Shown here piece by piece: positions 15,005 through 56,350 of a stretch of 64,000 nucleotides of DNA. Location of the stretch: the NCBI GenBank assembly GCA_002269645.1, contig NIVC01001564.1:62001-126000 (forward strand). The letters run 5' to 3'. How positions within the stretch are numbered: the stretch's first letter is position 1; each line of letters starts with the position of its first letter. This stretch comes from Macrostomum lignano. Taxonomy: Eukaryota. The notes below the pieces were generated by a model. It saw only the letters and a program-made list of their open reading frames with translations. It did not search any database and was not told where the DNA came from. The translations under genes were made by a program, and so were the position numbers.

Positions 15005-15150
15005 TGTTGTCAGCGCTCATTTTGGCGCCACAAGCACTGCTCATTTTGGCGCCACAGGCACTAATTTTGATGCCGCAGGCACTCATTTTGGCGCCACAAG
15101 CACTGCTCATTTTGGCGCCTAAGGCGCTATATTTTGGCTATTTTGGCACC
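15005..15150 (+). repeat. ~21-nt GCACTCATTTTGGCGCC satellite, same family as the OMA1 intron 1 array (opposite strand)
   Basis: The unit is the reverse complement of AAATGAGTGCCTGCGGCGCT; the flank GGTGTTGTCAGCGCT is shared with 36060-36085. Confidence 0.8.
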
Positions 15151-17258: not shown

Positions 17259-17310
17259 CTTTTCTAGTCTAGGAAGCGTAATTGTGTGTCTAACCAGAAA
17301 AACTTTCTGT

Positions 17311-17630: not shown

Positions 17631-18009
17631 ATCAGTCTTTGTATCGGATAGAACTGTTTATCTAACAGGTCTAACAAGCAGGACTGAGTATTTAACTTTC
17701 ATGTCGAACAGCTGGAACAGTAGTGTCTATCTTATAGACTAAAAACTCTATATAGTTAGCTATGTTTTCAAATTGTTCAGTAAACACTTTATCAGAAACA
17801 AATGATATGCTTCTGTGTACATGTAGAGTTGCAAAACAGAGCCTGTGTTTTTTCCTCCTCATCTAACTCTCGCATCCAGCTCTCTCGGAGCACTTGATTT
17901 ATTTGTCTAGCTGTCAGGCGGGACACGTGTAAACACGTTTTCTCTCGGTTGCATATTTTTTAACTCTATACTATAATGTTTTTCAACATCTTATTTCAAC
18001 CTGGTTCTA

Positions 18010-18787
18010 ACCCATCTCCTTCTACCCAGTCTCCTTCTACCCCATCTCCTTCTACCCAGTCTCCTTCTACCCCATCTCCTTCTACCCAGTCTCCTTCTAC
18101 CCCATCTCCTTCTACCCCGTTTCCTTCTATCCTTCTACCCCATCTCCTTCTACCCCGTTTCCTTCTATCCTTCTACCCCATCTCCTTCTACCCCGTCTCC
18201 TTCTATCCTTCTACCCCATCTCCTTCTACCCCATCTCCTTCTACCCCGTCTCCTTCTATCCTTCTACCCCATCTCCTTCTACCCCATCTCCTTCTACCCA
18301 TCTCCTTCTACCCCGTCTCCTTCTACCCCATCTCCTTCTACCCCGTCTCCTTCTACCCCGTCTCCTTCTACCCCGTCTCCTTCTACCCAGTCTTCTTCTA
18401 CCCCATCTCCTTCTACCCAGTCTCCTTCTACCCCATCTCCTTCTACCCCGTCTCCTTCTATCCTTCTACCCCATCTCCTTCTACCCCATCTCCTTCTACC
18501 CCATCTCCTTCTACCCCGTCTCCTTCTACCCCGTCTCCTTCTACCCCATCTCCTTCTACCCCATCTCCTTCTACCCCATCTCCTTCTACCCCATCTCCTT
18601 CTACCCCGTCTCCTTCTACCCCGTCTCCTTCTACCCCGTCTCCTTCTACCCCTTCTCCTTCTACCCCTTCTCCTTCTACCATCTCCTTCTTCCATATCTC
18701 CTTCTACCCCATCTCCTTCTACCCCATCTCCTTCTACCCCATCTCCTTCTACCCCATCTCCTTCTACCCCGTCTCCTTCTACCCCAC
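18010..18787. repeat. 15-nt minisatellite (CCCCATCTCCTTCTA)n, G-rich on the minus strand
   Basis: About 50 visible units. Confidence 0.97.
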
Positions 18788-19968: not shown

Positions 19969-20633
<665 letters not shown>

Positions 20634-30264: not shown

Positions 30265-30540
30265 CATACATGCGCAACCCCCCTGTTTTACACTGGCCAC
30301 GCGACTTACTTTTTGACCAAAAATGCGACTTACCTGTGAAAGAAACCCTAAAGCAAAATTAACGCTTATTTGGGTAAACGGCAGGAGTAACTATGACTGT
30401 CTTATCAGGCCTAAATGTCTCAGCATCTAATTAGTACTATGTCCGTATTCTTTGGGGTGGCATTTTTGCGACTTACCCCTGGTCCACCACAATTTACGGT
30501 GGCCAGATCGGCCAGGTCGGCCAGCAGTTGCACATGTATG
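30265..30540. mobile_element. 276-bp hAT-type MITE
   Basis: 14-bp TIRs CATACATGCGCAAC / GTTGCACATGTATG (1 mismatch); 8-bp TSD GATAAGAC at 30257-30264 and 30541-30548; subterminal GCGACTTAC x3. Confidence 0.85.
30372..30435 (+). other. Decayed 64-nt fragment of 28S rRNA helix 69-71 inside the MITE (not a functional rRNA gene)
   Basis: GGGTAAACGGCAGGAGTAACTATGACTGTCTTATCAGGCCTAAATGTCTCAGCATCTAATTAGT versus the conserved GGGTAAACGGCGGGAGTAACTATGACTCTCTTAAGGTAGCCAAATGCCTCGTCATCTAATTAGT: 52 of 64 identical without gaps. Confidence 0.88.
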
Positions 30541-31940
30541 GATAAGACTGTGAGATTGGATGATACTGAGTGAGATTGGATGAGACTGAGTGAGATTGGA
30601 TGAGAGACTGAGTGAGATTGGATGATACTGAGTGAGATAGGATGAGACTGTGTGAGATTGGATTAGACTGTGTGAGATTAGATGAAACTGATTGACATTA
30701 GATGAGACTGTAAGAGTTAGGATAAGACTGTGAGATTGGATGATACTGAGTGAGATTGGATGAGACTGAGTGAGATTGGATGAGAGACTGAGTGAGATTG
30801 GATGATACTGAGTGAGATAGGATGAGACTGTGTGAGATTGGATTAGACTGTGTGAGATTAGATGAAACTGATTGACATTAGATGAGACTGTAAGAGTTAG
30901 GATAAGACTGTGAGATTGGATGATACTGAGTGAGATTGGATGAGACTGAGTGAGATTGGATGAGACTGAGTGAGATTGGATGAGAGACTGAGTGAGATTG
31001 GATGATACTGAGTGAGATTGGATGAGACTGAGTGAGATTGGATGAGAGACTGTGTGAGATAGGATGAGACTGTGTGAGATAGGATGAGACTGTGTGAGAT
31101 TGGATTAGACTGTGTGAGATTAGATGAAACTGGGTGACATTAGATGAGACTGTAAGAGTTAGGATAAGACTGTGAGATTGGATGATACTGAGTGAGATGG
31201 ATGAGACTGAGTGAGATTGGATGAGAGACTGAGTGAGATTGGATGAGACTGTGAGGTTGAATGAGACTGAGTGAGGCTAGATGAGATGTTTGAGATTGTA
31301 TGAGACTGCGTGAGATTGTATGAGACTGTGTGAGATAGGATGAGGATACAACAGTGAGTTTAAAAAAAGCTAATAAATGAGCAGTACAAATAAATTTCAG
31401 TAATAATGAATTCTTCATAAATAAATACTCTAGGTCCCTTAACCAAATGAAGTTTATTGACAATCCTGCCACTAAAAAGCCAATGCTAACGTACACTGTT
31501 ACTGACACAAGATTTAGAAAAGCACATGAAAAATTACTTCACCTTATTGATCACAGATCAGGAATATAGGATAATAAGTAAGACCATAAGAGCAAGCATA
31601 TTAATTCTCTACAGGTGAAACTGGACTCACCATCCATGGAAAAGGCTTAAAACCAAAAGAAAATTAAGTAATTCGATAAGTTGTTATAACATTGATCAAT
31701 GCATTACAGCTAAAGCATGCAAGGCTGCACACAATATTTATGAGTTACATTTAGCTAAGCATTGCACTGCATGTATTGTTAAAAGTACTTTAATTGTACT
31801 TTCTAACATGCTGTTTCAACACGCCACTTTCTAGCACGCTTAGAATTCTATTAGCAAGAAAAGACACAAAGACAGACGGGTAGACGGACAGGAAGATAGG
31901 CGTACAGACGCAAAAAATAACCAGACGGACAGCCAGCCAC

Positions 31941-33649: not shown

Positions 33650-33821
33650 CTGTTGCAGGGGCGAGCGAACTTCGGCAGTGATGTTCAAAATCTCAAACTG
33701 GACTGGACTGTGTCTCAATCAAAATCTCATTTAAGATTCTGCAATCTCAAAATCTCAATATATAAGTTTGTGATTACTTGTAAAACAATCTAAAACATTT
33801 TGATACTGAGATACAATAAGA

Positions 33822-34635
33822 TACTGACAGGTAATAATCTCACCCATGAGATCGCAATGGGTAATAATCTCACCTTTAAGATTGACACAGGTAATAATCT
33901 CACCCATAAGATTGTGACAGGTAATAATGTCTTACCCATAAGATTGTGACAGGTAATAATCTCACTCATAAGATTGTGACAGGAAATAATCTCACCCATA
34001 AGATTGTGACAGGAAATAATCTCACTCATAAGATTGTGACAGGAAATAATCTCACCCATAAGATTGTGACAGGAAATAATCTCACCCATAAGATTGTGAC
34101 AGGAAATAATCTCACCCATGAGATCGCAATGGGTAATAATCTCACCCATAAGATTGTGACAGGTAATAATCTCACCCATAAGATTGTGACAGGAAATAAT
34201 CTCAGCCAGATGATTGTGACAGGAAATAATCTCAGCCAGATGATGGTGACAGGAAATAATCTCAATGAGATCGCAATGGGTAATAATCTCACCTTTAAGA
34301 TTGGGACAGGTATTGATAATAATCTCACCCATAAGATTGGGACAGGTATTGATAATAATCTCACCCATAAGATTGTGACAGGAAATAATCTCACCCATAA
34401 GATCGCAATGAGTAATAATCTCATTTTTAAGATTGAGACAGGTAATAATCTCACCTAAGAGATTGTGAAAGGTAATAATCTCACCCATAAGATTGTGACA
34501 GGAAATAATCTCAGCCAGATGATTGTGCGAGGTAATAATTAATGTCTCACCCATAAGATTGTGACAGGTAATAATCCCACCCATAAGATTGTGACAGGAA
34601 ATAATCTCACTCATAAGATTGTGACAGATAATAAT
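33822..34635. repeat. 30-nt minisatellite (GTGACAGGTAATAATCTCACCCATAAGATT)n in OMA1 intron 2
   Basis: Visible array. Confidence 0.95.
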
Positions 34636-34661
34636 CTTACAATTCTGAGACATAACAGTAC

Positions 34662-35221: not shown

Positions 35222-36085
35222 CAAAAATGAGTGCCTGCGGCGCTTAAATGAGTGCCAGCGGCGCTTAAATGAGTGCCAGCGGCGCTTAAATGAGTGCCAG
35301 CGGCGCTTAAATGAGTGCCAGCGGCGCTTAAATGAGTGCCAGCGGCGCTAAAATGAGTGCCTGCGGCGCTAAAATGAGTGCCTGCGGCGCCAAAATGAGT
35401 GCCTGTGGCGCTAAAATGAGTGCCTGCGGCGCTAAGATGAGTGCCTGCGGTGCTAAAATAAGTGTCTGCGAAGCTAAAATAAGTGTCTGCGAAGCTAAAA
35501 TGAGTGCCTGCGGCGCTAAAATGAGTGCCTGCGGCGCTTAAATGAGTGCCAGCGGCGCTTAAATGAGTGCCAGCGGCGCTTAAATGAGTGCCAGCGGCGC
35601 TTAAATGAGTGCCAGCGGCGCTAAAATGAGTGCCTGCGGCGCTAAAATGAGTGCCTGCGGCGCCAAAATGAGTGCCTGTGGCGCTAAAATGAGTGCCTGC
35701 GGCGCTAAAATAAGTGTCTGCGAAGCTAAAATGAGTGCCTGCGACGCTAAAATGAGTGCCTGCGGCGCTAAAATGAGTGCCTGCGGCGCTAAAATGAGTG
35801 CCTGCGGCGCTAAAATGAGTGCCTGCGGCGCTAAAATGAGTGCCAGCGGCGCTTAAATGAGTGCCTGCGGCGCTAAAATGAGTGCCTGCGGCGATAAAAT
35901 GAGTGTCTGCGAAGCTAAAATAAGTGTCTGCGAAGCTAAAATGAGTGCCTGCGGCGCTAAAATGAGTGCCTGCGGCGCTTAAATGAGTGCCAGCGGCGCT
36001 TAAATGAGTGCCAGCGGCGCTAAAATGAGTGCCTGTGGCGCTTCAATGAGTGCCCGTGGCACTAAAATAAGCGCTGACAACACCC
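35222..36085. repeat. 21-nt minisatellite (AAATGAGTGCCTGCGGCGCTA)n in OMA1 intron 1
   Basis: Visible array; explains the MSACGAK ORFs. Confidence 0.97.
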
Positions 36086-36548: not shown

Positions 36549-37199
36549 GTGGCGGGAAAGTGTTGACAGCAGAAGTTTATAATTATATTTATGAGCATGA
36601 GAGCATGAGAAAACAAGTGACCAGGAAAAATGAATGGAAAAAAAATTTTTATATAACAGATGCAGATATGAATTAGGACTGATGGCTTAAGCAGATAAAT
36701 AATCATTGTAAGCTTAGACAAATTTGTTTACTTAAAATTGAAACATTTAAAACTAGGATGCAGGCAGATATTAAGGCTTCTAATGTTGACTGCCACATCC
36801 TTAAAATTGCAACTATTTACTATTTCAACTAGGATTTCTATACTATGTATTTCTCTACTTAGCCAAGATTTTTTGTTTAGATATATTTAAATATACTATG
36901 TGGTACAAATAACTATAGACACTTACCCTACCTTAGACATCTTAAGGGTGTATCTTAAGAATAATAGTCACTAATACTAGAGGCAATGCCTTCAAGGATA
37001 CCATTATAATGTAATTATAATATTACATTATTCGAGTAAAATTGTCATGGCCAAAGATATTTGCTATGAATCTCTTTTATCTAAAGTAACAAAAAGACAA
37101 CAAAATAAAGCCTTCACAAAGATAATGGGCATTCCCCCTTAATAGAAACCATCTCCAAGATAGCACCCTAGAAAAAAACATGCTAAACTTAGAAAGTCA

Positions 37200-38694
37200 A
37201 CCATGGTACTTTCATGACAAGATTGACTTACAAAGTTTTCAAAGTAAGTATCAATTTTGTGGGCCACTTTGTGAGCCGAGCTTTGTGGGCCACTTCTGAG
37301 TCCACTGGCATGGGTTGTATGACTGCAAGGCAGAGTCCAGCCTGTTGATACCACTTATAAATCTGTTGTACGACACAATTGTCTGATGCTTCTGCTGGAT
37401 GACCAGTTCATTTCGCACGAATTGGTGAACAGGGTGAAGTTGGGCTACGCCTTGCATGTCAAGGAAGTAAACTTTCTTTAGGCCCGAGCTCTTCCTGTCA
37501 ACTATTTTCAATGCTAGCACATTTCCTTTGTGCATAAACATGTAGCTTGGAGCTTGGTTTCCCTGGTACCATGAAGACCATCTGGGACACAACAATCGGC
37601 GCAAACTATGCATGTCAGCATGGTGCTCCACTGCAGCAGATATATTGCAAGATGATAAGATCGGAAACCAGCTATCACAGATGTGATAACCTAAATCCAA
37701 TATGTACCTAACTGCCTCCACCAGGACTTTATCACTTAGAGACAGCCCCCCACACTCAAGATCTTGACCGAATCACTCATTCTCAGCTCTACTAGAACTA
37801 GAGTGCACTAAGAAGTTGCTCATGTAACTGGATCTCGCTTTGCAAAGACAATACAGTTTGATGCCATATCGTGCTTTCTTGGATGGAATATATTGACAAA
37901 ACATGACGCGACCCCTGAACAGAACAAGCTCTTTGTGGACACTAATTTCTTTTTCTGGCAATGTACACACTGCAACATATCTCAGCTACATGCATAATAA
38001 ATGGTCTTGCCTTTGCTAGTGGGTCGTTTCCATCGAAGTTGTTGCAGTCATAGAAGCGCAGCTGGCTATTGATCTGTTGGTACCTGTCCCTTGTCAGGCG
38101 AGCAAGTTGTTGGAAGAAAGGTGTTGTGTAGAAATCATCTTTGCTCCAATAGTTGGCGATCTTGGGCTTTTTAACTGTTCCCATGTAAAGCAACATGGCG
38201 ACAAACTTCTTTATCTCGTCCATGGTCACATCTTTCCACACAGAGAACCTTTGAGACAAGTTTGGCATCAATGCTTGTAGCTCATTGAATTTGCGCCATG
38301 TCCATGCATTGGTCCAAGCGCAGAGCTGTTTCAGTAGGTCAGCAGTCAGAAACAGCTTGAAAAACGCAGCTGGATTGTCATTGGCAGACTTTGGCCTCAG
38401 CAAGTCAGGATCCACACCAGGCATTCCCAAGAATTTGGCCTCTGCATCTGGCCGTTTATCATGCCCAACTTCCCGTGCCATCCAAGCATTATTTGGCAAG
38501 CTGCTGGCATCTTCATTTGGCTGGAGATGCAGGTCCTCTTTTTTATATTCACCTTCATCTGCTGTTAGCCAGCCTTTCTTCTCCTCTAGTTCAGAGTTGG
38601 TATCCAGATCAAAATGCACTTGAGCAACCATGACAAACACTGTCCGATACTTAGAAATTATTGCACTAAATAAAGCTACTGATCGATGATTCAA
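37200..38694 (-). pseudogene. piggyBac (PGBD4-like) transposase pseudogene
   Basis: FFKLFLT..., YWS...RDRYQQI...LRF, YIPSKKARYGIKLY and YNRFISGINRLD in three broken frames; catalytic Asp positions degenerate; TIRs not found. Confidence 0.9.
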
Positions 38695-40369: not shown

Positions 40370-40900
40370 TCTGGATCATGTAGTATATACCTGAAAATTT
40401 GGGCATACATTGGCCTTGCATGCCAAAAATAGGCATGCACAGTTGGCATACATCATTCCTAAGAAAATAGTATGTGTGCATACCTGGCATGTACTTCATA
40501 GAATCAAGTGGAAGAGTTATTATGAAGTAGAAAAAAAGACGAAAAAATGTTCTTTTTAAGTGAAAATTTCAAGCTTTCCAGTTTTTTTAAGCTTGTAATA
40601 AAGCATTCAAACAAAAGTTGCATGTATCAATTTTTTGCAATGAATAGTAGTCTTGAAGAAGTGGAAAAAACAACTAAAATATTTTCCAAAAAAGGTTCAT
40701 TATACAATTCCAAAAGGTTATTTATTGTCACAACATAAAAAGGTCATTTATTGTTGCAACACTATTATAGTTTTGAGAATGGGTATGCAGTAAATTTTTT
40801 GGCATTCATTTGTAATTATTTGATTTTTGTTCGGGTGTGCACCCAGCATGATCTGGACTATGGCCAGAAAAATGCATGTCCAACAGTAATAGTTCAACCC
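40370..40900 (+). repeat. Unclassified dispersed repeat, copy 2 (internally deleted)
   Basis: Aligns by eye with 10130-10254 joined to 10720-11090. Confidence 0.7.
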
Positions 40901-41231: not shown

Positions 41232-41279
41232 CCCAAGGACGACTTAAGTAGACTAGGGCCTACTTAAGTCGTCCTTGGG
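41232..41279. repeat. Perfect 20-bp inverted repeat with 8-nt loop
   Basis: CCCAAGGACGACTTAAGTAG actagggc CTACTTAAGTCGTCCTTGGG. Confidence 0.95.
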
Positions 41280-43130
41280 ATGGACCATGGACATCCTAGG
41301 CCTAGTCAAAGTCAAGCATGGTTTTCAATACAATTGTCAATTTCTATATGATGGTAATACTGAGCTAGCTAATTTATAGGTGATAATCTGAAACTAAGCT
41401 GGTTAAATTCGTAGGCGATAAACTGAAAATGAAAGTAACTATAATAACAATCAATAAAAATGAAACTCAGAGAATGTAATAAAATTGTAGCTCGGATTTT
41501 GAATATTGTAATTTCTTTAGAATTTGTTAGTTTTATATTGTATTTATATTATTTTCCACTCCTGTCCCTCATTCTGTAATTTTAGTAGTATATTGGTACA
41601 TTATCTACTTATTTTGTTATTATTTAGTTTATATTCAAATTGGAAAGAGCGTCGCGCTGGGGGGTCGTTCTCAAAATCAGGCACTGCTTATGCTTCCGTT
41701 TTTTTTCTTTAAAAATTCGTGACTCAATCTTTACCTAAGAACGAATTATAGATGCAACAAACGTATTTTGTGTCGTAAACCACAACAAAATGTCAGGACA
41801 GCATGGAATGCCGCTTTGTTTAAATATTATTATCGGAATTATTTTATTGCACGAAAACTAGAAATACACCAGCATATCATCGTCAAATTCTATAGAGTAA
41901 TTTATTCTTTTAAAATAGATAATAATTTCATTTAATTAGTTTTCTGTTTACGGAGCGCCGAACCCTTAAATAAACATATTTTGTTATAATATGACTGTAT
42001 ACCTATGATACGCATTCGTTTAACTTTGAACAATTTGTGCGTCGCGCAACCTGAGGGTACTATCTCAAGTATTACATTGCTTTGTTCGTGACATTTTCTA
42101 GCTATTTACAAATTAATTACAATGCGCATTGCGTTGGATAACGCAAATATAGTAATTCAAAACATTATCTGAAAATTGTTAGCTACATTTCTTAGCGTGA
42201 ACGACTGATATGTGCATTTATGCGCGAAATTTAGTATCCCGCTAGGCGCTAATTCATATCTGTGGTTACAAGAATGATTGCAAAGTTTATGTATCACATA
42301 ATCCTTTTGGATGATTCAAACATCCATAGGAAGATCTATATGTACTCATATTTTAACTCAGAAGTCTGCTTCAGACGGAAAAAGAATATATTTATACATC
42401 TACAGCAAAAATTAAAGCATGAGTGTATAATAGAGAAGCTTTATAGTAAGTATGAAATTACAAAGGCAGTTTAAATATAGCACACATGGCATATAAAGAG
42501 CTGAGAAAATTCGTGTGCATTGTGTATAGTCTCAAAAAGTTCAAGAAGATGCAAAAACTGGAAAGAAGAGACAAAACAAATCAAGCACAGAAATGAAATA
42601 TGATTGCAAAAAGCTTTGTTGCATTGTAAATATGCATGGAATATTGGAGTTTGGACATCTTAATATATGGTACATATGAATGCAGCCTGATATTCTGTAG
42701 AATTATCTATGTTTGACTCTAAATGTAATTATTTATTATAAATAAGACATTTTCTTGTCTTATATTTTTTATTCTTGCAAGAAATGTAGTCTTGCAAACA
42801 GCTATATACTCTAGTCTGCTATGAATGGATACAATATTATTAAACAAGAAGAAATTTAAAAAGTACATGTATACTGACTGGTTTATGCTAAAGTATTACA
42901 ATCCAAAAGGATTTACAAACGTTACTGCAGGACAAAAACAACTGAAAACAATTTGATGAAATGGGTAGATTAAAAAACATTTATCTGTATATGTAGGCAT
43001 GAAGGAACTATATAATGAAGCTATCGAAACAGTCATGCTTGGACTTGACTGCCCCTGAATCAATAAAAATAGTGCATGAAGAATGATAGTATTTTAAACA
43101 TAGTGTGCATTTAACACTAGTTTAAAGAAA

Positions 43131-43537
43131 TGTAACAGGATGTGATGGACCGAGTTTTGACATCATGGGTGTCGGATTATAATCCTCCAATACTTCGCCT
43201 CTTTTGGGCCTTCACCTTCGACTTACGTTTTCATGTACTTTTAGTCCCTTTAACATATTAATTAGTTGCAGCTAACCTTATTTATTGTCTATGACCTCAT
43301 CCCTACCGTTTAGCCAAGCAATTCCAGCAATAGTGACCTAGCTCATCCTTTGCGTTTACCACTTTTATATCTATGTACAAGACCTCTCCGTTATAGGTTT
43401 CTCTTAGCTTTGCTCCCCTCAGGCGCGTCCATGTTCCTTTCTTTCTGCTTTACCTTTTGCTTCCACTGCCACGAAATACACTCCATCTACTAACTGCTCA
43501 TTAGTTTGTTGTCCAAGCGACAAATTTGGTAGCAGAG
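43131..43537 (+). mobile_element. Gypsy-type 5' LTR plus tRNA-iMet primer-binding site
   Basis: TGTAAC...GCGACA (43131-43522) followed by TGGTAGCAGAG (43527-43537), complementary to the animal initiator tRNA 3' end. Confidence 0.75.
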
Positions 43538-43561
43538 CGTTCACAACTCTTCAAATAATTC

Positions 43562-44092
43562 ATGGTTATTATGCGTTCGATGGATGCCGGCGACACCACC
43601 TCCACTTCTGCAACCACTACTGCTCTGGCGCATACCATGCCGCCCACTCCGACCGCTGTTGCTGCCACCGCTGGCACTAGTTCTGGAGCCCCCACTGGTC
43701 CTGATGCCTCTTTGACACCCAACTTTAACGACCGCTACGACCTCGCCGGGACCGACCGGGGCCCACAACAACTGGCTGCTACTCCTACTGCGCCGGTCAC
43801 TGCTGCCACCCTCACCCCGACAACTCCTGGCATCGATGTCAACGCATTGATGACCGCGAAGATGCAGCAGAACCAACAGCTAATACAACAGCTCGCTGCC
43901 GCAGTCCATCCTGCTGCAACAGCGGAGCCTGCTGCACCGCCCACCTCAACGCCGCTGGAGATGCCGACTCCAAGGAGGCCATACTCCCTTGTCTCTGCCG
44001 CAGCCGATGGAGGCCTCGTTCCGCATTCGGATTTAAATACGAATGGTTCACCTTACTTGTACTACTTGCGCCTAACTTTATTTAATATATAA
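43562..44092 (+). pseudogene. Truncated gag-like N-terminus of the Gypsy element
   Basis: ORF just after the PBS; MQQNQQLIQQLA helix typical of gag N-termini; runs into unrelated DNA at about 44050. Confidence 0.55.
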
Positions 44093-44170
44093 ATGTGAGC
44101 AAATCAACCCCTACTTTAATGGTATATAGCACGTACAATTAGGATAGGATTTCATTTTTAGTATATAGGA

Positions 44171-47100
44171 CTAGCAATCTTCGCCCCCCGATGGGGGACA
44201 TCTGGATAGAATCTCTGTTTTCTAAAGTAACAAAAAGACAGCCAAAAATCCTTCAAAAAGACAACAGACAAACTGCTCAAATGAAGTGCATTGCAAAAAG
44301 AAATCATCCCAAGACTGCAAGCATCCCCCAGATAGCAAGCATCCCCTAGATAGCAAGCATCCCCAAGATGGCAAGCATCCCCCAGATAGCAAGCATCCCC
44401 CAGATTGCAAGCATCCCCCAGATAGCAAGCATCCCCAAGATAGCAAGCATCCCTCAGATAGCAAGCATCCCCCAGATAGCAAGCATCCCCCAGATAGCAA
44501 GCATCCCCCAGATAGCAAGCATCCCCAGATAGCAAGCATCCCCCAGAAAGCAAGCATCCCTCAGATAGCAAGCATCCCCCAGATAGCAAGCATCCCCCAG
44601 ATAGCAAGCATCCCCCAGATAGCAAGCATCCCCCAGATAGCAAGCATCCCCCAGATAGCAAGCATCCCCCAGATAGCAAGCATCCCCCAGATAGCAAGCA
44701 TCCCCCAGATAGCAAGCATCCCCCAGATAGCAAGCATCCCCCAGATAGCAAGCATCCCCAAGATAGATAGCATCCCCAAATAGCAAGCATCCACCAGACA
44801 ATAAGTAGCTAGTGCGACAATTTCCTTAGCATTATAGCGGCTCCTTTAAAATTCGCTTACTTTTACGTTTGAAATTGTGTATCTTTTTATGTTTAACAGG
44901 GTGGCTCTTTTATGTTCTACGCTCGTACATGGTAACTCTTTTATGTTTGATACGGTGGCTTTTCAATGTCTGACATAGTGGCTCTTCTATGTTTGACATG
45001 GGGGCTCTTCTATGTTTGACATGGGGGCTCTTCTATGTTTGACATGGGGGCTCTTCTATGTTTGACATGGGGGCTCTTCTATGTTTGACAAAGTGGCTTT
45101 TTAATGTTCAAAAAGGTGGCTCTTTTATGTTTGACATGGTGGCTCTTTAATGTTTGACATGGTGGCTCTTTAATGTTTGACATGGTGGCTCTTTAATGTT
45201 AGACAAAGTAGCTCTTTAATGTTTGACATGGTGGCTCTTTAATGTTAGACAAAGTAGCTCTTTAATGTTTGACATGATGGCTCTTTAATGATAGACATGG
45301 TGGCTCTTTAATTTTTGACATGGTGGCTCTTTAATGTTGGACATGGTGGCTCTTTAATGTTAGACATGGTGGCTCTTTAATGTTCGACATAAAGTCACTT
45401 ATATGTTTGACATGATGGCTCTTTTATGTTTAACATGGTGGCTCTTTAATGTTTGACATGGTAGCTCTTTTATGTTCGACATGGTGGCTCTTTAATGTTC
45501 GACATGGTGGCTCTTTTATGTTCGACATGGTGTCGCTTCAATGTTTGACATGGAGTTACGTATATGTTTTACATGGTGGCTCTTTTATGTTCGACGTGGT
45601 GGCTCTTTAATGTTTGACATGGGGTCTCTTCAATGTTTGACATGGAGTTACGTATATGTTTGACATGGTGGCTCTTTAATGTTTTACATGGTGGCACTTT
45701 CATGTTTGACCTGGTGGCTCTTAAATGTTTGACATGGTGGCTCTGTAATGTTTGACATGGTGTCTCTTTAACGTTTGACATAGAGTCATGTATATGTTTG
45801 ACATGGTGGCTCTTAAATGTTTGACATGGTGGCTCTTTAATATTTGACATGGTGGCCCTTTTATGTTCGACATGGTGGCTCTTTAATGTTTGACATGGAG
45901 TCATATATATGTTTGACCTGGTGGCTCTTGTATTTTTAACACGTTGGCTCTTTAATGTTCGACATGGTGGCTCTTAAATGTCTAACATGGAGTCACGTAT
46001 ATGTTTGACATGGAGTCATGTATATGTCTGGTATGGTAGCTCTTTAATGTTTTACATGGAGTCACCTATATGTTTCACATGGTGGCTATTTTATGTTTGA
46101 CATGGTGCTTCTTAAATGTTCGACATGGTGGCTCTTTAATGTTTTACATGGTGGCACTTTCATGTTTGACCTGGTGGCTCTTTAATGTTTGACATGGTGG
46201 CTCTTTAATATTTGACATGGTGGCCCTTTTATGTTCGACATGGTGGCTCTTTAATGTTTGACATGGAGTCATGTATATGTTTGACCTGGTGGCTCTTTAA
46301 TGTTTGACATGGTGGCTCTTTAATGTTTTACATGGTGGCACTTTCATGTTTGACCTGGTGGCTCTTTAATGTTTGACATGGTGGCTCTTTAATATTTGAC
46401 ATGGTGGCCCTTTTATGTTCGACATGGTGGCTCTATAATGTTTGACATGGAGTCATGTATATGTTTGACCTGGTGGCACTTTCATGTTTGACCTGGTGGC
46501 TCTTTAATGTTTGACATGGTGGCTTTTTAATATTTGACATGGTGGCACTTTCATGTTTGACCTGGTGGGTCTTTAATGTTTGACATGGTACCTCTTTTAT
46601 GTTCGACATGGTGGCTCTTTAATGTTTTACATGGTGGCTCTTTAATGTTTGACATGGTGGCTCTTTAATGTTTGATAAGGTGGCTCTTTAATGTTTGACA
46701 TTGTGGCTCTTTAATATTTGACAAGGTGGCTCTTTAATGTTTAAAATGGTGGTTCTTTAATTTTCGAAATGGTGGCTGTTTTATGTTTGACATGGTGGCT
46801 CTTTAATGTTCGACATGGTGGCTCTTTAATGTTCTTAATGGTGTCTGTTTTATGTTTGACCTGGCGGCTCTTTAATGTTTGACATGGTAACTCTTTTAGG
46901 TTTGAAATGGTGTCTCTTTAATGTTTGCCATTGTGGCTCTTTAATGTTTGACATGGTGGCTTTTTAATGTTCGACATGGTGGCTCTTTTAGGTTTGAAAT
47001 GGTGGCTCTTTAATGCTTGACATTGTGGCTCATTAATGTTCGACATGGTGGCTCTTTAATGTTTGACATGGTAACTCTTGTATGTTTGATATGGTGGCTC

Positions 47101-47787
47101 TTTTACGTTCGACATGGTGGCTCTTTAATGTTTGACATTGTGGCTCTTTAATGTTTGAAATGGTGGCTCTTTAATGTTTCGACATGGTGGCTCTTTAATG
47201 TTGAGAATTTTGTGTTTTTTAACGTGTTTTAATAAAAAAAACATTTTTCACCACTAAGATTCGAACCAAGGTCGCTACATTAGCATTCCAGTCTGTTTGC
47301 ATCCGGCTATCTCTTTTCAATTGAAGAACATGACTTGTGGCCCTTATAATTCAATACTTATAGCAAGTCGGTTAGAGTAAAAGTTATGACATAATCAATT
47401 TCTCAGTCAGCCAGTATCAGTCTCAATTCAAGTTAGCAATATGGTTACGCAATTTCAATGAAGTCTTGTGTGCGTTTCTGTGGCACTGTTTTCACCTTGT
47501 TGTGATGCAATCTTTATCACAATCGTAATTCAGCCAGTCAGTTTTTTCTCTAGCATTCTTACAATGCATTTCAAGTCAAAAATTTGGCTTGACCTTTGCA
47601 AAAAAGCATGTTTTTCGAATATTTAATCCCTTTAACATTGAGCAATTTCTTAGCCAAGATACATGTACCGTCCCAGGAACATTTCTGATCGAATGGTGCA
47701 AGTTTGAAGAAAATCGGTTGAGCCATTTTTTCTGAAATCTATCGCATAGCTAGTTAGTTACAGACATTTCATTTTTAGTATATAGGA
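44171..47787 (-). mobile_element. Non-autonomous Helitron, unit 1 (minisatellite-filled)
   Basis: Minus strand starts TC (47787) and ends GTCCCCCATCGGGGGGC hairpin + 8 nt + CTAG|T (44171); body of 18-nt and 23-nt arrays. Confidence 0.85.
44925..47200. repeat. 23-nt minisatellite (ATGTTTGACATGGTGGCTCTTTA)n in Helitron unit 1 (second array 48270-52010)
   Basis: Visible; explains the MSNIKEPPCQTLKSHHVKH ORFs. Confidence 0.97.
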
Positions 47788-50700
47788 CTAGCAATCTTCG
47801 CCCCCCCGATGGGGGACATCTGGTTAGAATCCTTGTTCTTTACAAATAACAAATAGACAGCGAACTAAAGCCTTCAAAAAACAACAACAGACATTCCCTC
47901 TAAAAACAAAACATCCCAAGACAGCAAGCATCCTCAGACAGCATTCAAGCATCGATCCCAAAATAGCAAGCATCCCCCAGATCGCAAGCATCCCCCCCGA
48001 TAGCAAGCAACCCCAGATAGCAAGCATCCCCCAGACCCCAGATAGCAAGCATTCCCCCAGACCCCAGATAGTAAGCATCCCCCAGATAGCAAGCATCCCC
48101 CAGATCGCAAGCATCCCCCAGATCGCAAGCATCCCCCAGATAGCAAGCACCCCAAATAGTAAGCATCCACCATACAATAAGTAAAGTAGCTAGTGCTACA
48201 ATTTCCTTAGCTCTATAGTGGCTCCTTTAAAATTGGCATGACGCTTACTTTTACGTTTGAAATTGTGTAAATTTTATGTTTGACATGGTGGCTCTTTAAT
48301 GTTTGACATGGTGGCTTTTTAATGTTTGACATGGTGGCTCTTTAATGTTTGACATGGTGGCTCTTTTATGTTCTACATGGTGGCTCTCTTATGTTTGATT
48401 CAGGGTTTTTTTAATGTCTGACATGGTGTCTCTTTATTGTTTGACATGGTGGCGTTTTACTGTTTGACATTATGGCTCTTTAATTTTTGACATGGTGGCT
48501 CTTTTATGTTTGAAATGGTGGCTCTTTATGTTAGACATGGTGGCTCTTTAATGTTCGACATGGTGGCTCTTTAATGTTAGACATGATGGCTCTTTAATGT
48601 TTGACATTGCGGCTCTTTTAATGTTTGACATGGTGGCTCTTTTATGTTGGACATGGTGGCTCTTTTTTGCTTGACATGGTGGCTCTTTACTGTTTGACAT
48701 GGTGGCTCTTTAATGTTCGAAATGGTGGCTCTTTAATGTTTGACATGATGGCTCTTTTATGTTTGACATGGTGGCTCTTTTATGTTGGACATAGTGGTTC
48801 TTTAATGTTCGACATTGGTTGCTCTTTTATGTTCAAAAAGGTGGCTTTTTAATGTTAGACATGGTGGCTCTTTAATGTTCGACATGGTGGCTCTTTAATG
48901 TTAGACATGGTGGCTCTTTATTGTTCGACATGATGGCTCTTTAATGTTTGACATTGCGGCTCTTTAATGTTTGACATGGTGGCTCCTTTATGTTTGACAT
49001 GGTGGCTCTTTTTTGATTGACATGGTGGCTCCTTTATGTTTGACATGATGGCTCTTTTATGTTTGACATGGTGGCTCTTTAATGTTTTACGTGGTGGCTC
49101 TTTAATGTTCTTCATGGTAGCTCTTTTATGTTTGACATGGAGTCACGAATATACTTGACATGGTGACTCGTTATTGTTCGACATGGTGGCTCTTCTATGT
49201 TTGACATGGTAGCACTTTAATGTTTGACATGCTGGCTCTATAATGTTTGACATGGAGTCACATATATGTTGGACATGGTGGCTCTTTAATGTTCGACATG
49301 GTGGCTCTTTAATGTTTGACATGGTGGCTCTTCAATGTTTGACATGATGGCTCTTCAATGTTTGACATTGCGGCTCTTTAATGTTTGACATGGTGGCTCC
49401 TTTATGTTTGACATGGTGGCTGTTTTAAGTTTGACATGGTGGCTCTTTTTTGATTGACATGGTGGCTCCTTTATGTTTGACATGATGGCTCTTTTATATT
49501 TGACATGGTGGCTCTTTTATGTTTGACATGGTGGCTGTTTTATGTTTGACATGGTGGCTCTTCTATGTTTGACATGGTGGCTCTTTAATGTTCTACATGG
49601 TGGCTCTCTTATGTTTGATTCGGGTTTTTTTTAATGTCTGACATGGTGTCCCTTTATTGTTTGACATAGTGGCTCTTTTATGTTTGACATGATGGCTCTT
49701 TAATGTTCGACATGGTGGCTCTTTAATGTTTGACATGGTGGCTCTTTAATGTTTGACCTGGTGGCACCTTAATGTAATGATGGCTCTTTAATGTTTGAAA
49801 TGGTGGCTCTTTAATGTTCGACATGGTGGCTCCTTTATGTTTAACATGGTGCTCTTAAATGTTTGACATCGTGGCTCTTTAATGTTTGACATGGTGGCTC
49901 TCTAGTGTTTCACATGGAGTCACGTCTGTGTTTGACATGGAGTCACGTATATATTTGGCATGGAGTCACGTATATGCTTTTCATGGTGGCTCTTTTATGT
50001 TTGACATGGTGGGTCTTTAATGTTTGACATGGTGGCTCTTTAATTTTTGACATGATGGCTCTTTAATGTTCGACATGATGGCTGTTTAATGTTTGTTATG
50101 TAGTCATGTGTATATGTTTTACATGGTGGCTCTTTTATGTGTGACATGGAGTCACGTATATATTTGACATGGAGTCACATATATGTTTGACATGATGGCT
50201 CTTTTATGTTTGACATGGTGGCTCTTTTATGTTTGACATGGTGGCTGTTTTATGTTTGACATGGTGGCTCTTCTATGTTTGACATGGTGGCTCCTTAATG
50301 TTCTACATGGTGGCTCTCTTATGTTTGATTCGGGTTTTTTTTAATGTCTGACATGGTGTCCCTTTATTGTTTGACATAGTGGCTCTTTTATGTTTGACAT
50401 GATGGCTCTTTAATGTTCGACATGGTGGCTCTTTAATGTTTGACATGGTGGCTCTTTAATGTTTGACCTGGTGGCACCTTAATGTAATGATGGCTCTTTA
50501 ATGTTTGAAATGGTGGCTCTTTAATGTTCGACATGGTGGCTCCTTTATGTTTAACATGGTGCTCTTAAATGTTTGACATCGTGGCTCTTTAATGTTTGAC
50601 ATGGTGGCTCTCTAGTGTTTCACATGGAGTCACGTCTGTGTTTGACATGGAGTCACGTATATATTTGGCATGGAGTCACGTATATGCTTTTCATGGTGGC

Positions 50701-52604
50701 TCTTTTATGTTTGACATGGTGGGTCTTTAATGTTTGACATGGTGGCTCTTTAATTTTTGACATGATGGCTCTTTAATGTTCGACATGATGGCTGTTTAAT
50801 GTTTGTTATGTAGTCATGTGTATATGTTTTACATGGTGGCTCTTTTATGTGTGACATGGAGTCACGTATATATTTGACATGGAGTCACATATATGTTTGA
50901 CATGGTGGCTCTTTAGTGTTCGATATGGTGGCTGTTTAATGTTTGACATAGTGGCTATTTTATGTTTGACATAGTGGCTCTTTAATGTCTGACATGGTGG
51001 CTCTTTAATGTTTGACATGGTGGCTCTTTTATGTTCGACATGGTGGCTCTTTAATGTACGACATAATGGCTCGTTTATTTTCGACATGGTGGCTCTTTAG
51101 TGTTTGACATGGCTTTTTAATGTTTGACATGGTGGCTCTTTTATGCTTGACATGGTGGCTCTTTAACGTTCGACATGGTGGCTCTTTAATGTTTGACATG
51201 GTGGCTCTTTTATGCTTGACATGGTGGCTCTTTAATGTTTGACATAAAGTCACTTATACATGGTGTCTCTTAAATATTAGACATGGTGGCTCGTTTAGGT
51301 TTGACATGTTGGCTCTTTTATGTTTGACATGGTGGCTCTTTTATGTTCGACATGGTGGCTCTTTTTTGTTCTACATGGTAACTCTTTTATGTTTGATACG
51401 GTGGCTTTTTAATATCTGACATGGTGGCTCATCTATGTTTGACATTGTGGCTCTTCTGTGTTTGACATGGTGGCTGTTTAATGTTTGACATGGTGGCTCT
51501 TTAATGTACGACATAATGGCTCGTTTAAGTTGGACATGGTGGCTTTTTAATGTTTGACATGGTAGCTCTGTTATGTTCGACATGGTGGCTCTTTTAGGTT
51601 TGACATGGTGGCTCTTAAATGTTTCACATGGTGGCTCTTAAATGTCTTACATGGTGGCTCTTTTATGTTTGACAATGTGGCTGTTTAATGTTTTACATGG
51701 CGGCTCTTTTATGTTCGACATGGTGGCTCTTTAATGTTTGACATGCTAGCTCTTTAATGTTCGACATAGTGGCTCTTTTATGTTTGGCATGGTGGCTATT
51801 TAATGTTCTTCATGGTGGCTCTTTTACGTTTGACATGGTGGGTCTTTAATGTTCGACGTGGTGGCTCTTTAATTTTCGAAATGGTGACTCTTTTATGTTT
51901 CACATGGTGGCTCTTTAATGTTTGACATAGAGTGACGTATATGTTTTACATGGTGCCCATGTAATGTTTGACATGGTGCCTCTTTTATGTTTGACATTGT
52001 GCTTTTTTATGTTTAGCAGTTTCGTGTTTTCAAGGTGTTTTAATAAAAAAATCTTTTTGCAGCACTAAGATTGGAACCCAGGTCGCTGCATTAGCAGTCC
52101 AGTCTGTTCGCATCTATGCTATCTCTTTTCAATTGGCGAACATGATTTGTGGCCCTTATAATTCAATGCTTACAGCAAGTTGGTTAGAGTAAAAAGTTAT
52201 GACATAATCAATTTCTTAGTCAGCCAGTATCAGTGTCAATTTAAGTTAGCAATATTGTTACGCAATTTCAATCAAGTTGTGTGTGCATTTCTTTGGCACT
52301 GTTTTCAACTTGTTGTGATGCAATATTTATCAGAATTGAAATTCAGTCAGTCAGTTTTTTCTCTAGCATTCTTACAATGCATTTCAGATCGAAAGAGCCG
52401 CTTGACCTTTGCGAAAAAGCCTGTTTTTCGAATATTTAATCCCTTTAATATTGAGCAATTTTTTAGCCAAGATGCATGTACCGTCCCAGGAAAATTTCTG
52501 ATCGAATGGTGCAAGTTTGAAGAAAATCGGTTGAGCCATTTTTTCTGAAATCTATCGCATACCTACCCACATACATACAGACAACTCATTTTTAGTATAT
52601 AGGA
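47788..52604 (-). mobile_element. Non-autonomous Helitron, unit 2 (head-to-tail with unit 1)
   Basis: A|TCCTATATAC 5' end at 52604; same hairpin and CTAG at 47788; CTAG|TC junction with unit 1; ~710-bp internal duplication (49621 vs 50331). Confidence 0.85.
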
Positions 52605-52638
52605 TATATAGGATAGTTAGAGAGCTGAGATGAGCTAC

Positions 52639-54792
52639 CTAAGGTTCGTTGCAAAAGTCATAAGGGAGCAGCGCCTTTTCATCACCACTTGCACGTCCAC
52701 GTCCACCTCCGCGTCCTCGTCCACCTCGGCGTCCACCTCCGCGTCCTCGTCCACCTCGGCGTCCACGTCCACCTCCACGCCCACATCCGAGTCCACTCGT
52801 TGCAGTATCAGGAGCTGGCGCCTCCGGCAGCATCAGCGGCGCCCACACTTTCATCTCGTGGCATGGGCAGGCTACTGCTGTACCAGGGCACATGCAGGAC
52901 AGCTGACGGTAAGTGATCGGCCCACCATCAGTCCTTGAGACGTCGTGCATCGACTTCGAGCCTGGCATGCCGCAGAGGTCCTCACCTACGAAGGTGATGA
53001 TGCTTGTGAAATAGTTCATGTCCTCTGGCTGAACCAACCATGTGAGTATGTGCAGAGGGCTACCCGATCTGACGGCTTCCATAACATCCTGAGGTGTTAC
53101 AACGTCCTGCCGGCTAGCCACGACTTCATCGCAGCGGCGTTTGATAGCCGCTCCAACTCCATCCGCAGCACCCTTGCCGTGTCCGGCCTCTGTGTAGATC
53201 CAACGCCAGCTTGACACCCTCATGATCTTCATCAGGCGGTCGAATAAGAAAACCATCTTGCGATTTCTATACTGGCTGGATGGCGAATCAGAGACGATGA
53301 CGATCTGGTCCAGTTGGCTAAAGGCGTCCTTATCGACATCGTGCTTCTCCTTAAAGTGGCGAAGGACTGGTTGTAGATGAGCGGCGATGGCCTCCGCCGT
53401 CTTACTCCTCTCTCCTGATACCGTTGCGAATGAGCAAGGTTGATGTCCAGCCATGTAGGCCACGCCTTGATGAAGCACCACCTGATCCTTGTCGCCAAAG
53501 TGCGCCGCCTGTACCTCTTTGTGGTACTTCGCCGTATAGTTTTCGGAGAAGTCTATGTGCAACAGGAGCTGTCCCGGCTGCAGAGTATCCTTAACCTGGC
53601 GGATTGCACGATACTGGTTCCGCATCCGCATAAAGTGGCCCGCAAAGTCGACTAGTTGCACCATCAGCATGCTGATAGCCGTCTTGCATGATGCCGTCTC
53701 TTTGACCACATCCAAGCCGCTGCGTCCATCTGTCCGAGGCTTCCAAACGCGGTACACAACCTGTGGCTCAGCCTCAGCTGTCTCCGTGACTACAAATGAC
53801 TTGCGACGGCACTCGTCGCATTTGCGCAGCAGGCAGTCAGCGTATTCCATGTCGCAGACCATTTCATTCAACACTTTAGTAATGTGGTGGCTGTGAAGAA
53901 GTCCAGCAATGTGCATGCCTTTGATTAAGGACTCCGTGTTAGTGCACTTTATGCACATACACATGTCTCGGTCACACAGACGAGCCCTCTTGACATACCA
54001 TGGCTTCCAGCGGTTAAATGTTGCCCGGCTGATCTTCACACCAGGATACTCCCAAAGGAACTTTGCATGGAGCAGGGAGACTGAGCTCAGGAGATAACGC
54101 TTCTGCTTTGTCTCCTTCTCCTCGCCAAATCTCTTGGAGATGCAATCCTTCCGGGAGGAGGTGGCCCGCGAGTTTTCGTCCTGGCAAAAGTACTCCTGGA
54201 CGACGCTCACAAGCAGATTTATCTTCGGCGCTCTCGGCTGCTTCAAGATCTTCGCGGAGGCGCCAAAGAAGGCCATGACGGCCTTCCGTCCTGCCTCGTG
54301 GGCGTTTAGACAGGCAGCCTTGATTACTCGCCGGGTGTTATTGAACCGTCTGACTGACTGCAGCGCTCTCTTCACATGGCTAGCTATGTTGGTGAAAGTC
54401 TGAAGCCGGCAACTTTTTGCCGCCAATTCCTTATTCGCGCGGTGAAGTTTCACTCGCAGGCAGGTTTTGCTTGTCTTGCGCTGCTTGGCAGCAGTCTCAA
54501 GCAGGTGCACCCTGGCCTTTAGCTTGGCATTCTCCCGCTTGAACGCCGCTGCCGATCTTGCCAAGGATCGCTGGGGGATCTCTGCCGAAGTGCTGGACCC
54601 TGCCTTGTCCTTGCGATTGCCTTTGTCCCTATACTTCTGCTGTTGCCGCCGCATGTGCTCTAGGTAGCTACTGTGGGAGCCAAAATTTGTTTTAATATAT
54701 TTTTTCCTCTTTTCACGCCGCTTTTGTCGTTCAGTCGGCTTGAACGGCATTGCTTGAAACAGATGGTGGGAATTTTTGTGTTTTGCAGTCAT
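52639..54792 (-). CDS. Sola2-type DDD transposase, ~717 aa, uninterrupted, with Gly/Arg-rich tail
   Basis: CMCIKC and CLLRKCDEC Cys motifs, HIDFSENY, VSDSPSSQYRN, HGKGAADGVGAAIKR; first ATG 54792 (the track start is TTG). Confidence 0.85.
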   Translation of the reverse strand: MTAKHKNSHHLFQAMPFKPTERQKRREKRKKYIKTNFGSHSSYLEHMRRQQQKYRDKGNRKDKAGSSTSAEIPQRSLARSAAAFKRENAKLKARVHLLETAAKQRKTSKTCLRVKLHRANKELAAKSCRLQTFTNIASHVKRALQSVRRFNNTRRVIKAACLNAHEAGRKAVMAFFGASAKILKQPRAPKINLLVSVVQEYFCQDENSRATSSRKDCISKRFGEEKETKQKRYLLSSVSLLHAKFLWEYPGVKISRATFNRWKPWYVKRARLCDRDMCMCIKCTNTESLIKGMHIAGLLHSHHITKVLNEMVCDMEYADCLLRKCDECRRKSFVVTETAEAEPQVVYRVWKPRTDGRSGLDVVKETASCKTAISMLMVQLVDFAGHFMRMRNQYRAIRQVKDTLQPGQLLLHIDFSENYTAKYHKEVQAAHFGDKDQVVLHQGVAYMAGHQPCSFATVSGERSKTAEAIAAHLQPVLRHFKEKHDVDKDAFSQLDQIVIVSDSPSSQYRNRKMVFLFDRLMKIMRVSSWRWIYTEAGHGKGAADGVGAAIKRRCDEVVASRQDVVTPQDVMEAVRSGSPLHILTWLVQPEDMNYFTSIITFVGEDLCGMPGSKSMHDVSRTDGGPITYRQLSCMCPGTAVACPCHEMKVWAPLMLPEAPAPDTATSGLGCGRGGGRGRRGGRGRGGGRRGGRGRGGGRGRASGDEKALLPYDFCNEP

Positions 54793-55324
54793 TTCAAGCA
54801 ATTACAGCTGCAGTCTAATTTGGACAATCATGTGATTGGGAATCACTTAGATGTTACTAGGGGCAACAAACCCAGCAATGTCACTATTAGATGCCTCAAC
54901 TGCCAGTAGGACCTAGTGGAAAAGCTTCAAAAATGATATCCAAATTTTGCAGTCTATTTTGTGCTAAATCTGCATAGAGTCTAAACTGTATCTTTCATTT
55001 AAATAATGCCAATAGCTACTTGCTTATTGGGACACAAAATTCAGGATTTTTTGCAAGAAACTGTACATTTCAAAGTAAAATTTTCCAAATGGCCAAAACT
55101 TTTTTTGATGGACCAATTTCTACAAATAAAGCCACTTGATTCATATTCTTTCAGTCATTGAGATCTAATATCTAATTTAAAACATCAATTTTAATTTCAA
55201 GTTTAAAATGCTACTGAATCCCTTACTCATAAATTACAGTTTGTATGTATTGCCTGGTTTCTAAATTGTTAACATATTTTGTGTGGCTTATATGCAATAT
55301 TTTCTTTTAAAAAATTAATGCTCC

Positions 55325-55683
55325 TACACAACACCTAGTAAAACATTCTCCAAAAAATTCAGCCCAATCAGTTCTTTCAGTGACCCATGATGGCAGTCCC
55401 AATGGTTTGACATATGCAAAAGTGCATGTTTTTTCAGATGTTTTACTTAATTGTGGGGCTCAGAGGCAATGTATTTAAAAATGCAAAAAATGCTCCCATA
55501 AGACACCTAGTCTAACACTCTCCAAAAAATTCGGCCCAATCAGTTCTTTCAGTGACCCATGATGGCAGTCCCAACGTTTTGACACATGCAAAAGTGCATG
55601 TTTTTCAGATGCTCTGCTTAATTGTGGGGCTCAGAGGCAATGTATTTAAAAAAGCACAAAAATGCTCCTGTAAGACACCCAGT
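55325..55683. repeat. ~171-bp tandem duplication in the 5' region of the Sola2 element
   Basis: CCCAATCAGTTCTTTCAGTGACCCATGATGGCAGTCCC at about 55363 and 55534. Confidence 0.9.
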
Positions 55684-56350
55684 TCTCCACTTTACTCCTT
55701 TTTTTGGTCATTATCTTATTCCAGTGTTGCAAAACTGTGGTCCCAACGTTTATTGGCTTGTGTCTGTCTTAGTAGCAATTAATTGTATAAAAAAATATTG
55801 CAACAACTGTGGTGCACTAATCCATATAAAAACATCACAAATACAAAGATCACATTATAAGGCACAAAAAAACGCCAAAAGACGCCATATGCATTGCTTT
55901 CACCTAAAAAACTAGCAATATATTTGTACAATTCAACTGCTAGTAACTAGAACAGTGATGCGTTTAAGTGATGAAAGATTGTGTTTAAGTCAAGGAACAA
56001 ATCACTAAGCAGTCATTCTTTAATAAGAAGCAAATTCTAATGTTCTTTTCTTCCTTCCTGTGCAAAATAGTTTATTTCTGATGTTTCTTTCCCATTGAAT
56101 TTTTTCACAAAACATGACACCGTCTTAGCGTTACATCGAAGAAATGGAAATATTAAATTGATAAAATGACTCAGTAGTCAGTTGCTTTGACAACCGTACC
56201 AATTTCACTGTTTCGAATGATAAATAAAGTACTTTTCTTTCAACAGCTACGTTTACCCTGTTGCTTGTTTTGCATGAAAGGCTGGTTCAGGGTCGAAAAT
56301 TTTTTTTCTTGTTTTATCGCGTAATTCCTGATTTTGAGAACGACCCTGGG

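Follow-up and report, generated by a model that had tools for sequence, protein, structure and literature searches.

A 14,685-bp segment of the genome of the flatworm Macrostomum lignano is most plausibly a single copy of an autonomous-type Sola2 DNA transposon with two non-autonomous Helitrons nested in its 3′ untranslated region (UTR), a reading to which we assign a probability of roughly 0.7. The segment occupies positions 41662-56346 of the window, by which we mean the whole stretch of 64,000 nucleotides that was analyzed (contig NIVC01001564.1, positions 62,001 to 126,000, forward strand); coordinates below are those of the window unless another contig is named. The assembly, NIVC00000000 / GCA_002269645.1, is Mlig_3_7 of the M. 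lignano genome (PMC5730564). The carrier is an intact-looking autonomous Sola2 element, a member of a known superfamily, and a nested insertion into its 3′ UTR is an ordinary event.

Ends and transposase of the Sola2 carrier

The element is delimited by a perfect pair of 20-bp terminal inverted repeats (TIRs), outside which stands an identical target-site duplication (TSD) of exactly 4 bp on each side (Table 1). The TIR sequence has just these two matches in the window, even when up to three mismatches are allowed (chance expectation 0.00), and neither TIR nor TSD can be extended because the bases immediately outside differ between the two sides. The termini read 5′-GGG...CCC-3′, and the TSD is what would be expected from a staggered cut at TGGG. 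The transposase gene lies between these ends on the minus strand, its reading frame uninterrupted up to a TAG stop codon. A preliminary description of this DNA, made from the sequence alone, had reported perfect 20-bp TIRs, a TGGG TSD, an uninterrupted DDD transposase of about 717 amino acids, and a carrier free of decay; all of these stand, with both ends and the open reading frame (ORF) intact. The 5′ non-coding region holds a 172-bp repeat in 2.1 copies (55317-55683, 89% matches, Tandem Repeats Finder), which may be a subterminal or promoter repeat.

The three catalytic residues, counted from the TTG, are D417 (53551-53553), D505 (53287-53289), and D547 (53161-53163), corresponding to D398, D486, and D528 in P0001 numbering, which is used below. 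Cysteine-rich motifs lie upstream of the catalytic core. An alignment of 36 family sequences has 34 invariant columns, among them the three aspartates and several of the upstream cysteines; the invariant aspartates fall in the motifs hIDFSENY, SD(G/S)P..QYRN, and E.GHGKG..DG.G. The M. lignano transposase keeps every family-invariant residue, the D-D-D triad included.

Relatives of this protein were few in a word-indexed protein search, with a best identity of 39% and the beetles Brassicogethes aeneus and Pyrocoelia pectoralis among the hits, and protein searches found no orthologue above 42% identity in another species. An exhaustive profile search returned 17,520 representative clusters at E≤1e-3 and 3,406 at E≤1e-30. 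A Pfam scan of the transposase gave noise only, Pfam having no model for the family. In an AlphaFold2 model (mean predicted local distance difference test score, pLDDT, of 64), the core is ordered strand-strand-strand-helix-strand-helix-strand-helix. D398 belongs to the first strand, D486 comes right behind the fourth, and D528 sits immediately ahead of the next helix, so placed that the three residues are predicted to occupy canonical RNase H-like positions. The top Foldseek matches in the PDB were RNase H-like domains throughout (PIWI, the C-terminal half of UvrC, EndoV, and RNase H), at E≥1e-3 and with low TM-scores. Sola2 has been classed as RNase H-like (PMC5751038).

The C-terminal tail of the transposase is rich in RGG/GR and is encoded by repeats of 12, 18, and 30 nt (52692-52796, minus strand). 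Sequence matches in the PDB were confined to this tail (ribosomal and Sm proteins), and the nearest relative, P0002, bears a similar tail. The tail may be a functional region for nucleic-acid binding or localization.

Table 1. Features of the Sola2 element and the Helitron block nested in it (window coordinates).
Feature	Position	Strand	Remarks
Left TSD, TGGG	41658..41661	.	identical to 56347-56350; direct repeat of exactly 4 bp
Transposase-distal (3′) TIR, GGGTCGTTCTCAAAATCAGG, 20 bp	41662..41681	+	100% complementary to 56327-56346
Non-coding 3′ region of Sola2, 2,467 bp	41682..44148	-	site of the Gypsy fragment of the preliminary description
Stub of a third Helitron head, TCCTATATACTAAAAATGAAAT, 22 bp	44149..44170	-	directly after the CTAG of unit A
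Helitron unit A, non-autonomous, 3,617 bp	44171..47787	-	TC head, GC hairpin, CTAG
Helitron unit B, non-autonomous, 4,817 bp	47788..52604	-	built like unit A
Duplicate of the Helitron head, TCCTATATA, 9 bp	52605..52613	-	immediately upstream of unit B; last base A
Sola2-type DDD transposase ORF	52639..54801	-	720 codons from TTG; 717 aa from first ATG at 54792
5′ non-coding region, 1.5 kb	54802..56326	-	no second copy within the window
Transposase-proximal (5′) TIR, 20 bp	56327..56346	-	exact reverse complement of GGGTCGTTCTCAAAATCAGG
Right TSD, TGGG	56347..56350	.	identical to left TSD

The assignment to Sola2, also proposed in the preliminary description, was compared with two published transposases, Sola2_DFa-2 and Sola2_PPa-1, taken from the supplement of Bao & Jurka 2013 (PMC3627910). 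Hhalign matched the profile of the 36-sequence family to Sola2_DFa-2 with a probability of 96.2% (E 2.2e-9), and a 7-sequence alignment gave 95% (E 4e-8); against Sola2_PPa-1 the family profile reached E 1.1e-4 and a probability of 57% in the same register. The segments DFSEN, SD...QYRN, and GHGK..D align with the reference motifs in both DFa-2 and PPa-1, the three aspartates pairing with those of DFa-2, and the motifs shared with DFa-2, an element of Dictyostelium fasciculatum, can be written DF[SK]EN ... SD....[FY][KR][NS] ... HGK...D. The similarity to DFa-2 is at profile level only, pairwise BLASTP being not significant. Sola2 TIRs are short and begin 5′-GRG, a rule that was compared here with the DFa-2 consensus and the relatives described below: the ends read GGG in the M. 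lignano element, GAG in DFa-2, and GGGT in the relatives L003 and L006. The DFa-2 consensus begins with GAG and finishes with CTC, and published Sola2 elements have 4-bp TSDs (PMC3627910), as does the present one. Transposase homology, conserved D-D-D, 5′-GGG ends, and a 4-bp TSD together place the element in Sola2.

Like the Sola2 elements of Dictyostelium and Polysphondylium, the M. lignano element is large and has long non-coding regions. The 10-14 kb elements of those hosts carry foreign Fanzor genes in their 3′ parts (PMC3627910), a protein-coding passenger in place of the Helitron pair with minisatellites found here in a flatworm. The TSD of the Dictyostelium elements is AWWT, compared with the GC-rich TGGG here.

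The preliminary description had allowed that the TIR pair could come from a different element than the ORF. Two relatives bear on this point. The first, L003 (ENA assembly ERZ26052378, contig ctg10134), is a 7,232-bp element at 7837-15068 of its contig with ends GGGTGATTCTCA..., which encodes an 822-aa transposase homologue (31% identical over 64% of the query) and is flanked by a perfect AGGT TSD. Its TIR is GGGTGATTCTCAGCAAAAGG, the two ends reading GGGTGATTCTCAGCAAAAGGGTCCAA and GGGTCATTCTCAGCAAAAGGGCCCAA, and in each of them 14-15 of the 20 bases agree with GGGTCGTTCTCAAAATCAGG, including 10-11 of those at the first 12 positions. Its layout is the same, with about 2.2 kb before the ORF and about 2.6 kb after, and it pairs near-identical ends with a 4-bp TSD, but at 7.2 kb it has no Helitron block past the stop codon. 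The second, L006, is a Pyrocoelia locus in which the termini GGGTCATTATCA and GGGTTGTTCTCA (8808 and 19678) stand beside a homologue, with no matched pair with a TSD; here too the first 12 nt of GGGTCGTTCTCAAAATCAGG agree at 10-11 positions. Judged by these loci and DFa-2, 5′-GRG ends, a 4-bp TSD, and this transposase co-occur across organisms, and the TIR pair of the M. lignano element belongs to its transposase ORF because relatives elsewhere carry the same terminal motif. The TIR consensus GGGTYRTTMTCA, common to the M. lignano element, L003 (TSD AGGT), and L006, offers an annotation handle for this very large family without a Pfam model (the 17,520 representative clusters above).

A second terminal style was seen in L002 (Brassicogethes; 9880-9970 and 13125-13160) and L005 (2-82 and 5480-6012), where multiple GGGACGGT[AT]ATGA subterminal repeats occur in both orientations; these may be transposase-binding sites of a sister clade. 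Clear TIRs could not be made out in L002, L004, and L005.

The Helitron block and its probable origin

The insertion measures 8,456 bp (44149-52604), and minisatellite with units of 23 bp and 18 bp takes up 6,711 bp of this length (79%). The insertion consists of two Helitron units of one plan on the minus strand, B followed by A, head to tail with an exact CTAG|TC joint, the terminal CTAG of B (47788-47791) abutting the TC of A. Read 5′ to 3′ on that strand, unit A opens with the head TCCTATATAC... and a 580-bp unique part (47208-47787), followed by a 23-bp array of 99 copies (44927-47202), an 18-bp array of 27 copies (44317-44798), a hairpin (44183-44199), and CTAG (44171-44174). Unit B has its head and a 585-bp unique part at 52020-52604, a 23-bp array of 163 copies at 48272-52014, an 18-bp array of 12 copies at 47963-48172, and a hairpin at 47800-47817. 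Tandem Repeats Finder gives the 23-bp unit as ACATGGTGGCTCTTTAATGTTTG and the 18-bp unit as GCAAGCATCCCCCAGATA. Both units and the 22-bp stub begin TCCTATATACTAAAAA, with 5′-TC, and both units end ...GTCCCCCATCGGGGGG(G)CGAAGATTGCTAG, comprising a GC stem of 5-7 bp, 9 nt, and then CTAG. The head TCCTATATACTAAAAA of unit B begins at 52604, 35 nt past the TAG stop codon, and unrelated sequence follows the 22-bp third head. The insertion is flanked by A on its 5′ side and by T after the last CTAG, but these flanks are the 9-bp and 22-bp head copies, so that the original target does not read cleanly.

Compared with each other, the unique parts of the two units show 90% identity across 580 bp on the 5′ side and 81-92% on the 3′ side. 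The statements of the preliminary description that the Helitron starts 35 bp from the stop codon, that the insertions fall 3′ of it, and that the two units are diverged from each other thus agree with what we found (about 10% difference over the 580-bp unique 5′ parts), and the size given there for the cargo, about 9.4 kb, gives way to the measured 8,456 bp. Neither unit contains a sizeable ORF outside the repeats. A Helentron or Helitron2 type was considered and rejected: the reverse complement of the first 8-12 nt occurs nowhere in either unit, so that there is no asymmetric TIR, and the ends are of the canonical Helitron type because no inverted copy of the head lies near the tail.

Non-autonomous Helitrons with internal tandem repeats include DINE-1/DINE-TR1 of Drosophila and the satellite-bearing Helitrons/Helentrons of bivalves. 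The M. lignano units share with these a 5′-TC, a 3′-CTAG, a GC hairpin about 9 nt before the CTAG, the lack of coding sequence, central minisatellite arrays, and the head-to-tail order. They differ in having no Helentron-type TIR and in arrays that are unusually long, 2.3 and 3.7 kb, lengths that depend on the long-read assembly. The nested Helitrons illustrate the spread of minisatellite-laden rolling-circle elements through the repeat-rich M. lignano genome. Besides the two units and the stub, the family is represented in the window by a single internal fragment of 100 bp (37068-37165), which is 76-84% similar to the 3′ internal part of the Helitron and has neither hairpin nor terminus. A tRNA B-box-like motif of the GGTTCGAATC type on the sense strand of the Helitron, in the 5′ unique parts (47255-47265 and about 52070-52080) was dismissed as a visual resemblance, ARAGORN and Rfam both being negative.

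The preliminary description had counted a Gypsy element as part of the cargo, in the 2,467 bp between the block and the left TIR. Searches of 41682-44148 in six frames and in its ORFs found no Pfam domain, gag and pol included, at E up to 0.1, and no direct repeats longer than 27 nt, such as long terminal repeats (LTRs) would form, occur in 41662-44320. The largest ORF there (43562-44092, plus strand; 176 aa, rich in Ala, Thr, and Pro) has no homologue among 5.8 billion proteins, and the region has no second copy in the window. With no gag or pol domain, no LTR pair, and no homologue of the ORF, we rejected a Gypsy (Ty3/mdg4) insertion. A solo LTR or a non-coding LTR fragment within the region is a case that only a repeat library could exclude. 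The 2.5 kb is probably the native 3′ region of the element, the L003 relative having about 2.6 kb after its ORF. Because 41682-44148 is read as native, the core of the element minus the Helitron block comes to about 6.2 kb, made up of a 1.5-kb 5′ region, a 2.2-kb ORF, and a 2.5-kb 3′ region.

Rolling-circle (peel-and-paste) insertion at an A|T site would have brought in the Helitrons, most likely in the present copy or its immediate progenitor. The exact CTAG|TC joint would result if a second unit entered the first at its A|TC junction; alternatively, read-through past a 3′ end between neighboring donors may have delivered both units at once, which would give the same joint. The units would already have been about 10% different on arrival, and the minisatellites would have expanded by slippage or unequal exchange.

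Divergence of the units inside the carrier was addressed by neutral simulation. With 5% change per lineage (10% pairwise), the ORF stayed open in 1.2% of trials and all 40 TIR bases were unchanged in 13%, from which it follows that, under neutrality, the divergence of the units did not build up inside this carrier. The units probably differed before arrival, or else the carrier was under selection during propagation; the first is the simpler explanation. The combination of diverged units and an undecayed carrier is better explained without long joint propagation. The same figures tell against a single Helitron that inserted, duplicated in situ, and has since diverged by about 10%. The precise head-to-tail CTAG|TC joint with a further partial head is what rolling-circle read-through or unequal crossing-over yields, and this speaks for such a duplication; however, the carrier is intact where the simulation would seldom leave it so, and the 18-bp arrays of the two units differ in pattern as well as in length (27 and 12 copies). 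We regard in situ duplication as very improbable.

The block could also be filler DNA: a double-strand break in the element, left perhaps by an abortive excision, would have been repaired with sequence taken from a tandem array of Helitrons elsewhere in the genome. It is not bounded by clean termini, with a 9-bp partial head before it and a 22-bp partial third head after it, and the 8-mer CTATCCTA is present in both flanks, as this origin could explain. Against it, the upstream boundary is exactly A|TC, which fits a true Helitron insertion, a fragment of an array should start with a tail and not with a 9-bp duplicate of the head, and no donor array is known. An origin as filler DNA is, on balance, quite unlikely.

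Several points tell against the interpretation of the segment as a Sola2 copy with two nested Helitrons. First, the Helitrons are recognized by structure, with no RepHel protein found and no independent copy in a different sequence context within the window. Second, the hairpins fold no better than shuffled sequence (z -0.2 and -0.6). Third, two clean insertions do not account for the third head of 22 bp or for the 9 bp of duplicated head. Fourth, a single copy cannot order the arrival of the Helitrons relative to the last Sola2 jump. Fifth, on the side of the carrier, two Sola2 references and the terminal features are what place it among the Sola groups, the structural model is only moderately confident, and its Foldseek matches are weak. 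The dependence of the array lengths on long-read assembly, noted above, belongs with these points.

Gene models and mobility of the composite

In the protein database, the exact transposase protein is recorded on a single contig, NIVC01000504.1 of GCA_002269645.1. The 90% cluster of P0001 has two further members, UniProt A0A1I8J4H8 (P0008) and A0A1I8GA31 (P0009), both from the older ML2 assembly, which differ by predicted splicing and one residue. The word-indexed protein search found no fragmentary paralogues of the transposase. Both ML2 entries are named 'ATP-dependent DNA helicase', and with no helicase domain detectable in them this is probably an annotation error. The P0009 model splices the transposase C-terminus, at about 52683, to an exon at 44081-43839 (minus strand); the implied intron would take in the whole Helitron block and measure 8.6 kb here, or about 0.14 kb in an assembly lacking the block. 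This is at most a hint of a version in which the Helitrons are missing or spliced out.

Whether the 14.7-kb composite is a functional mobile unit, one that has moved and can move with the Helitron dimer and its minisatellites aboard, was weighed on several grounds; the preliminary description had suggested as much from the contrast between the diverged units and the undecayed carrier. Its TIRs are perfect, its TSD is intact, and its ORF is open with all invariant residues. No known requirement in cis or in trans has been destroyed, because the Helitron block spares the ORF and stays over 2.4 kb away from both ends, and the composite would thus appear to retain what cut-and-paste transposition needs. 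Several cut-and-paste superfamilies tolerate more than 10 kb of cargo. On the other hand, the exact protein is on one contig only in the protein database, and neither these records nor the window revealed another copy bearing this cargo. The insertion parts the stop codon from any native 3′ processing signals, the P0009 model joins the transposase to the exon at 44081 as if the block were intronic or absent, and insertion of one element into another that is already in place happens more often. We consider a mobile composite unlikely, and it is a little less likely still that an active 14.7-kb Sola2 moves by cut-and-paste and would thereby seed the Helitron dimer and about 6.7 kb of minisatellite at new loci of the flatworm. 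As in Pack-MULEs, cargo-carrying CACTA and hAT elements, and ordinary nested transposable elements, one element sits inside an untranslated part of another with ends and gene spared; in Pack-MULE-type elements, however, multiple copies demonstrate mobility with cargo, whereas one copy is known here.

The same records bear on whether the transposase could instead be a domesticated host gene whose flanking ends are relics. The gene looks single-copy in the protein database and both annotations, Mlig_3_7 and ML2, have a gene at this locus, as would suit a host gene. Perfect TIRs and an intact TSD point rather to a recent insertion, the searches above found no orthologue in other species past the 42% identity mark, and the neighborhood is rich in transposable elements, so that domestication is highly improbable. 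A resident, intact-looking Sola2 copy that received nested Helitrons is the reading we retain.

We know of no transposon of the Sola superfamily that has been seen to transpose experimentally. Transgenesis is established in M. lignano, and together with perfect ends, an intact TSD, and the complete set of residues, this makes the element a reasonable candidate for a first test of Sola activity.

Surroundings in the window

To the left of the element lie two pieces of a piggyBac-type transposase ORF (PF13843) on the minus strand, at 37251-37721 and 37942-38694 (E 1e-23 and 2e-4). A 653-aa gene annotated by NCBI starts at 43220 on the minus strand, inside the 3′ region of Sola2, and exits through the left TIR toward these ORFs; the model may represent a read-out transcript or a chimera. 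An inverted repeat with perfectly matched 20-bp arms, 8 nt apart, occupies 41232-41279 (CCCAAGGACGACTTAAGTAG ... CTACTTAAGTCGTCCTTGGG), some 400 bp to the left of the element, and the left flank at 40664-40863 is a 200-bp repeat that is 80% identical to 10875-11082.

At least 14 further minisatellite arrays with periods of 15-30 bp occur in the window, for example at 1845-2377, 4564-5155, 6754-8514, 17308-17628, 18005-18786, 30539-31344, 33816-34637, and 35224-36068. A near-match to the Helitron head, TCTTATAGACTAAAAA with two mismatches, stands between two arrays at 17730 (plus strand), and other repeat-carrying Helitron-like elements may be common in the window. A perfect (GATA)166 tract runs from 19969 to 20632.

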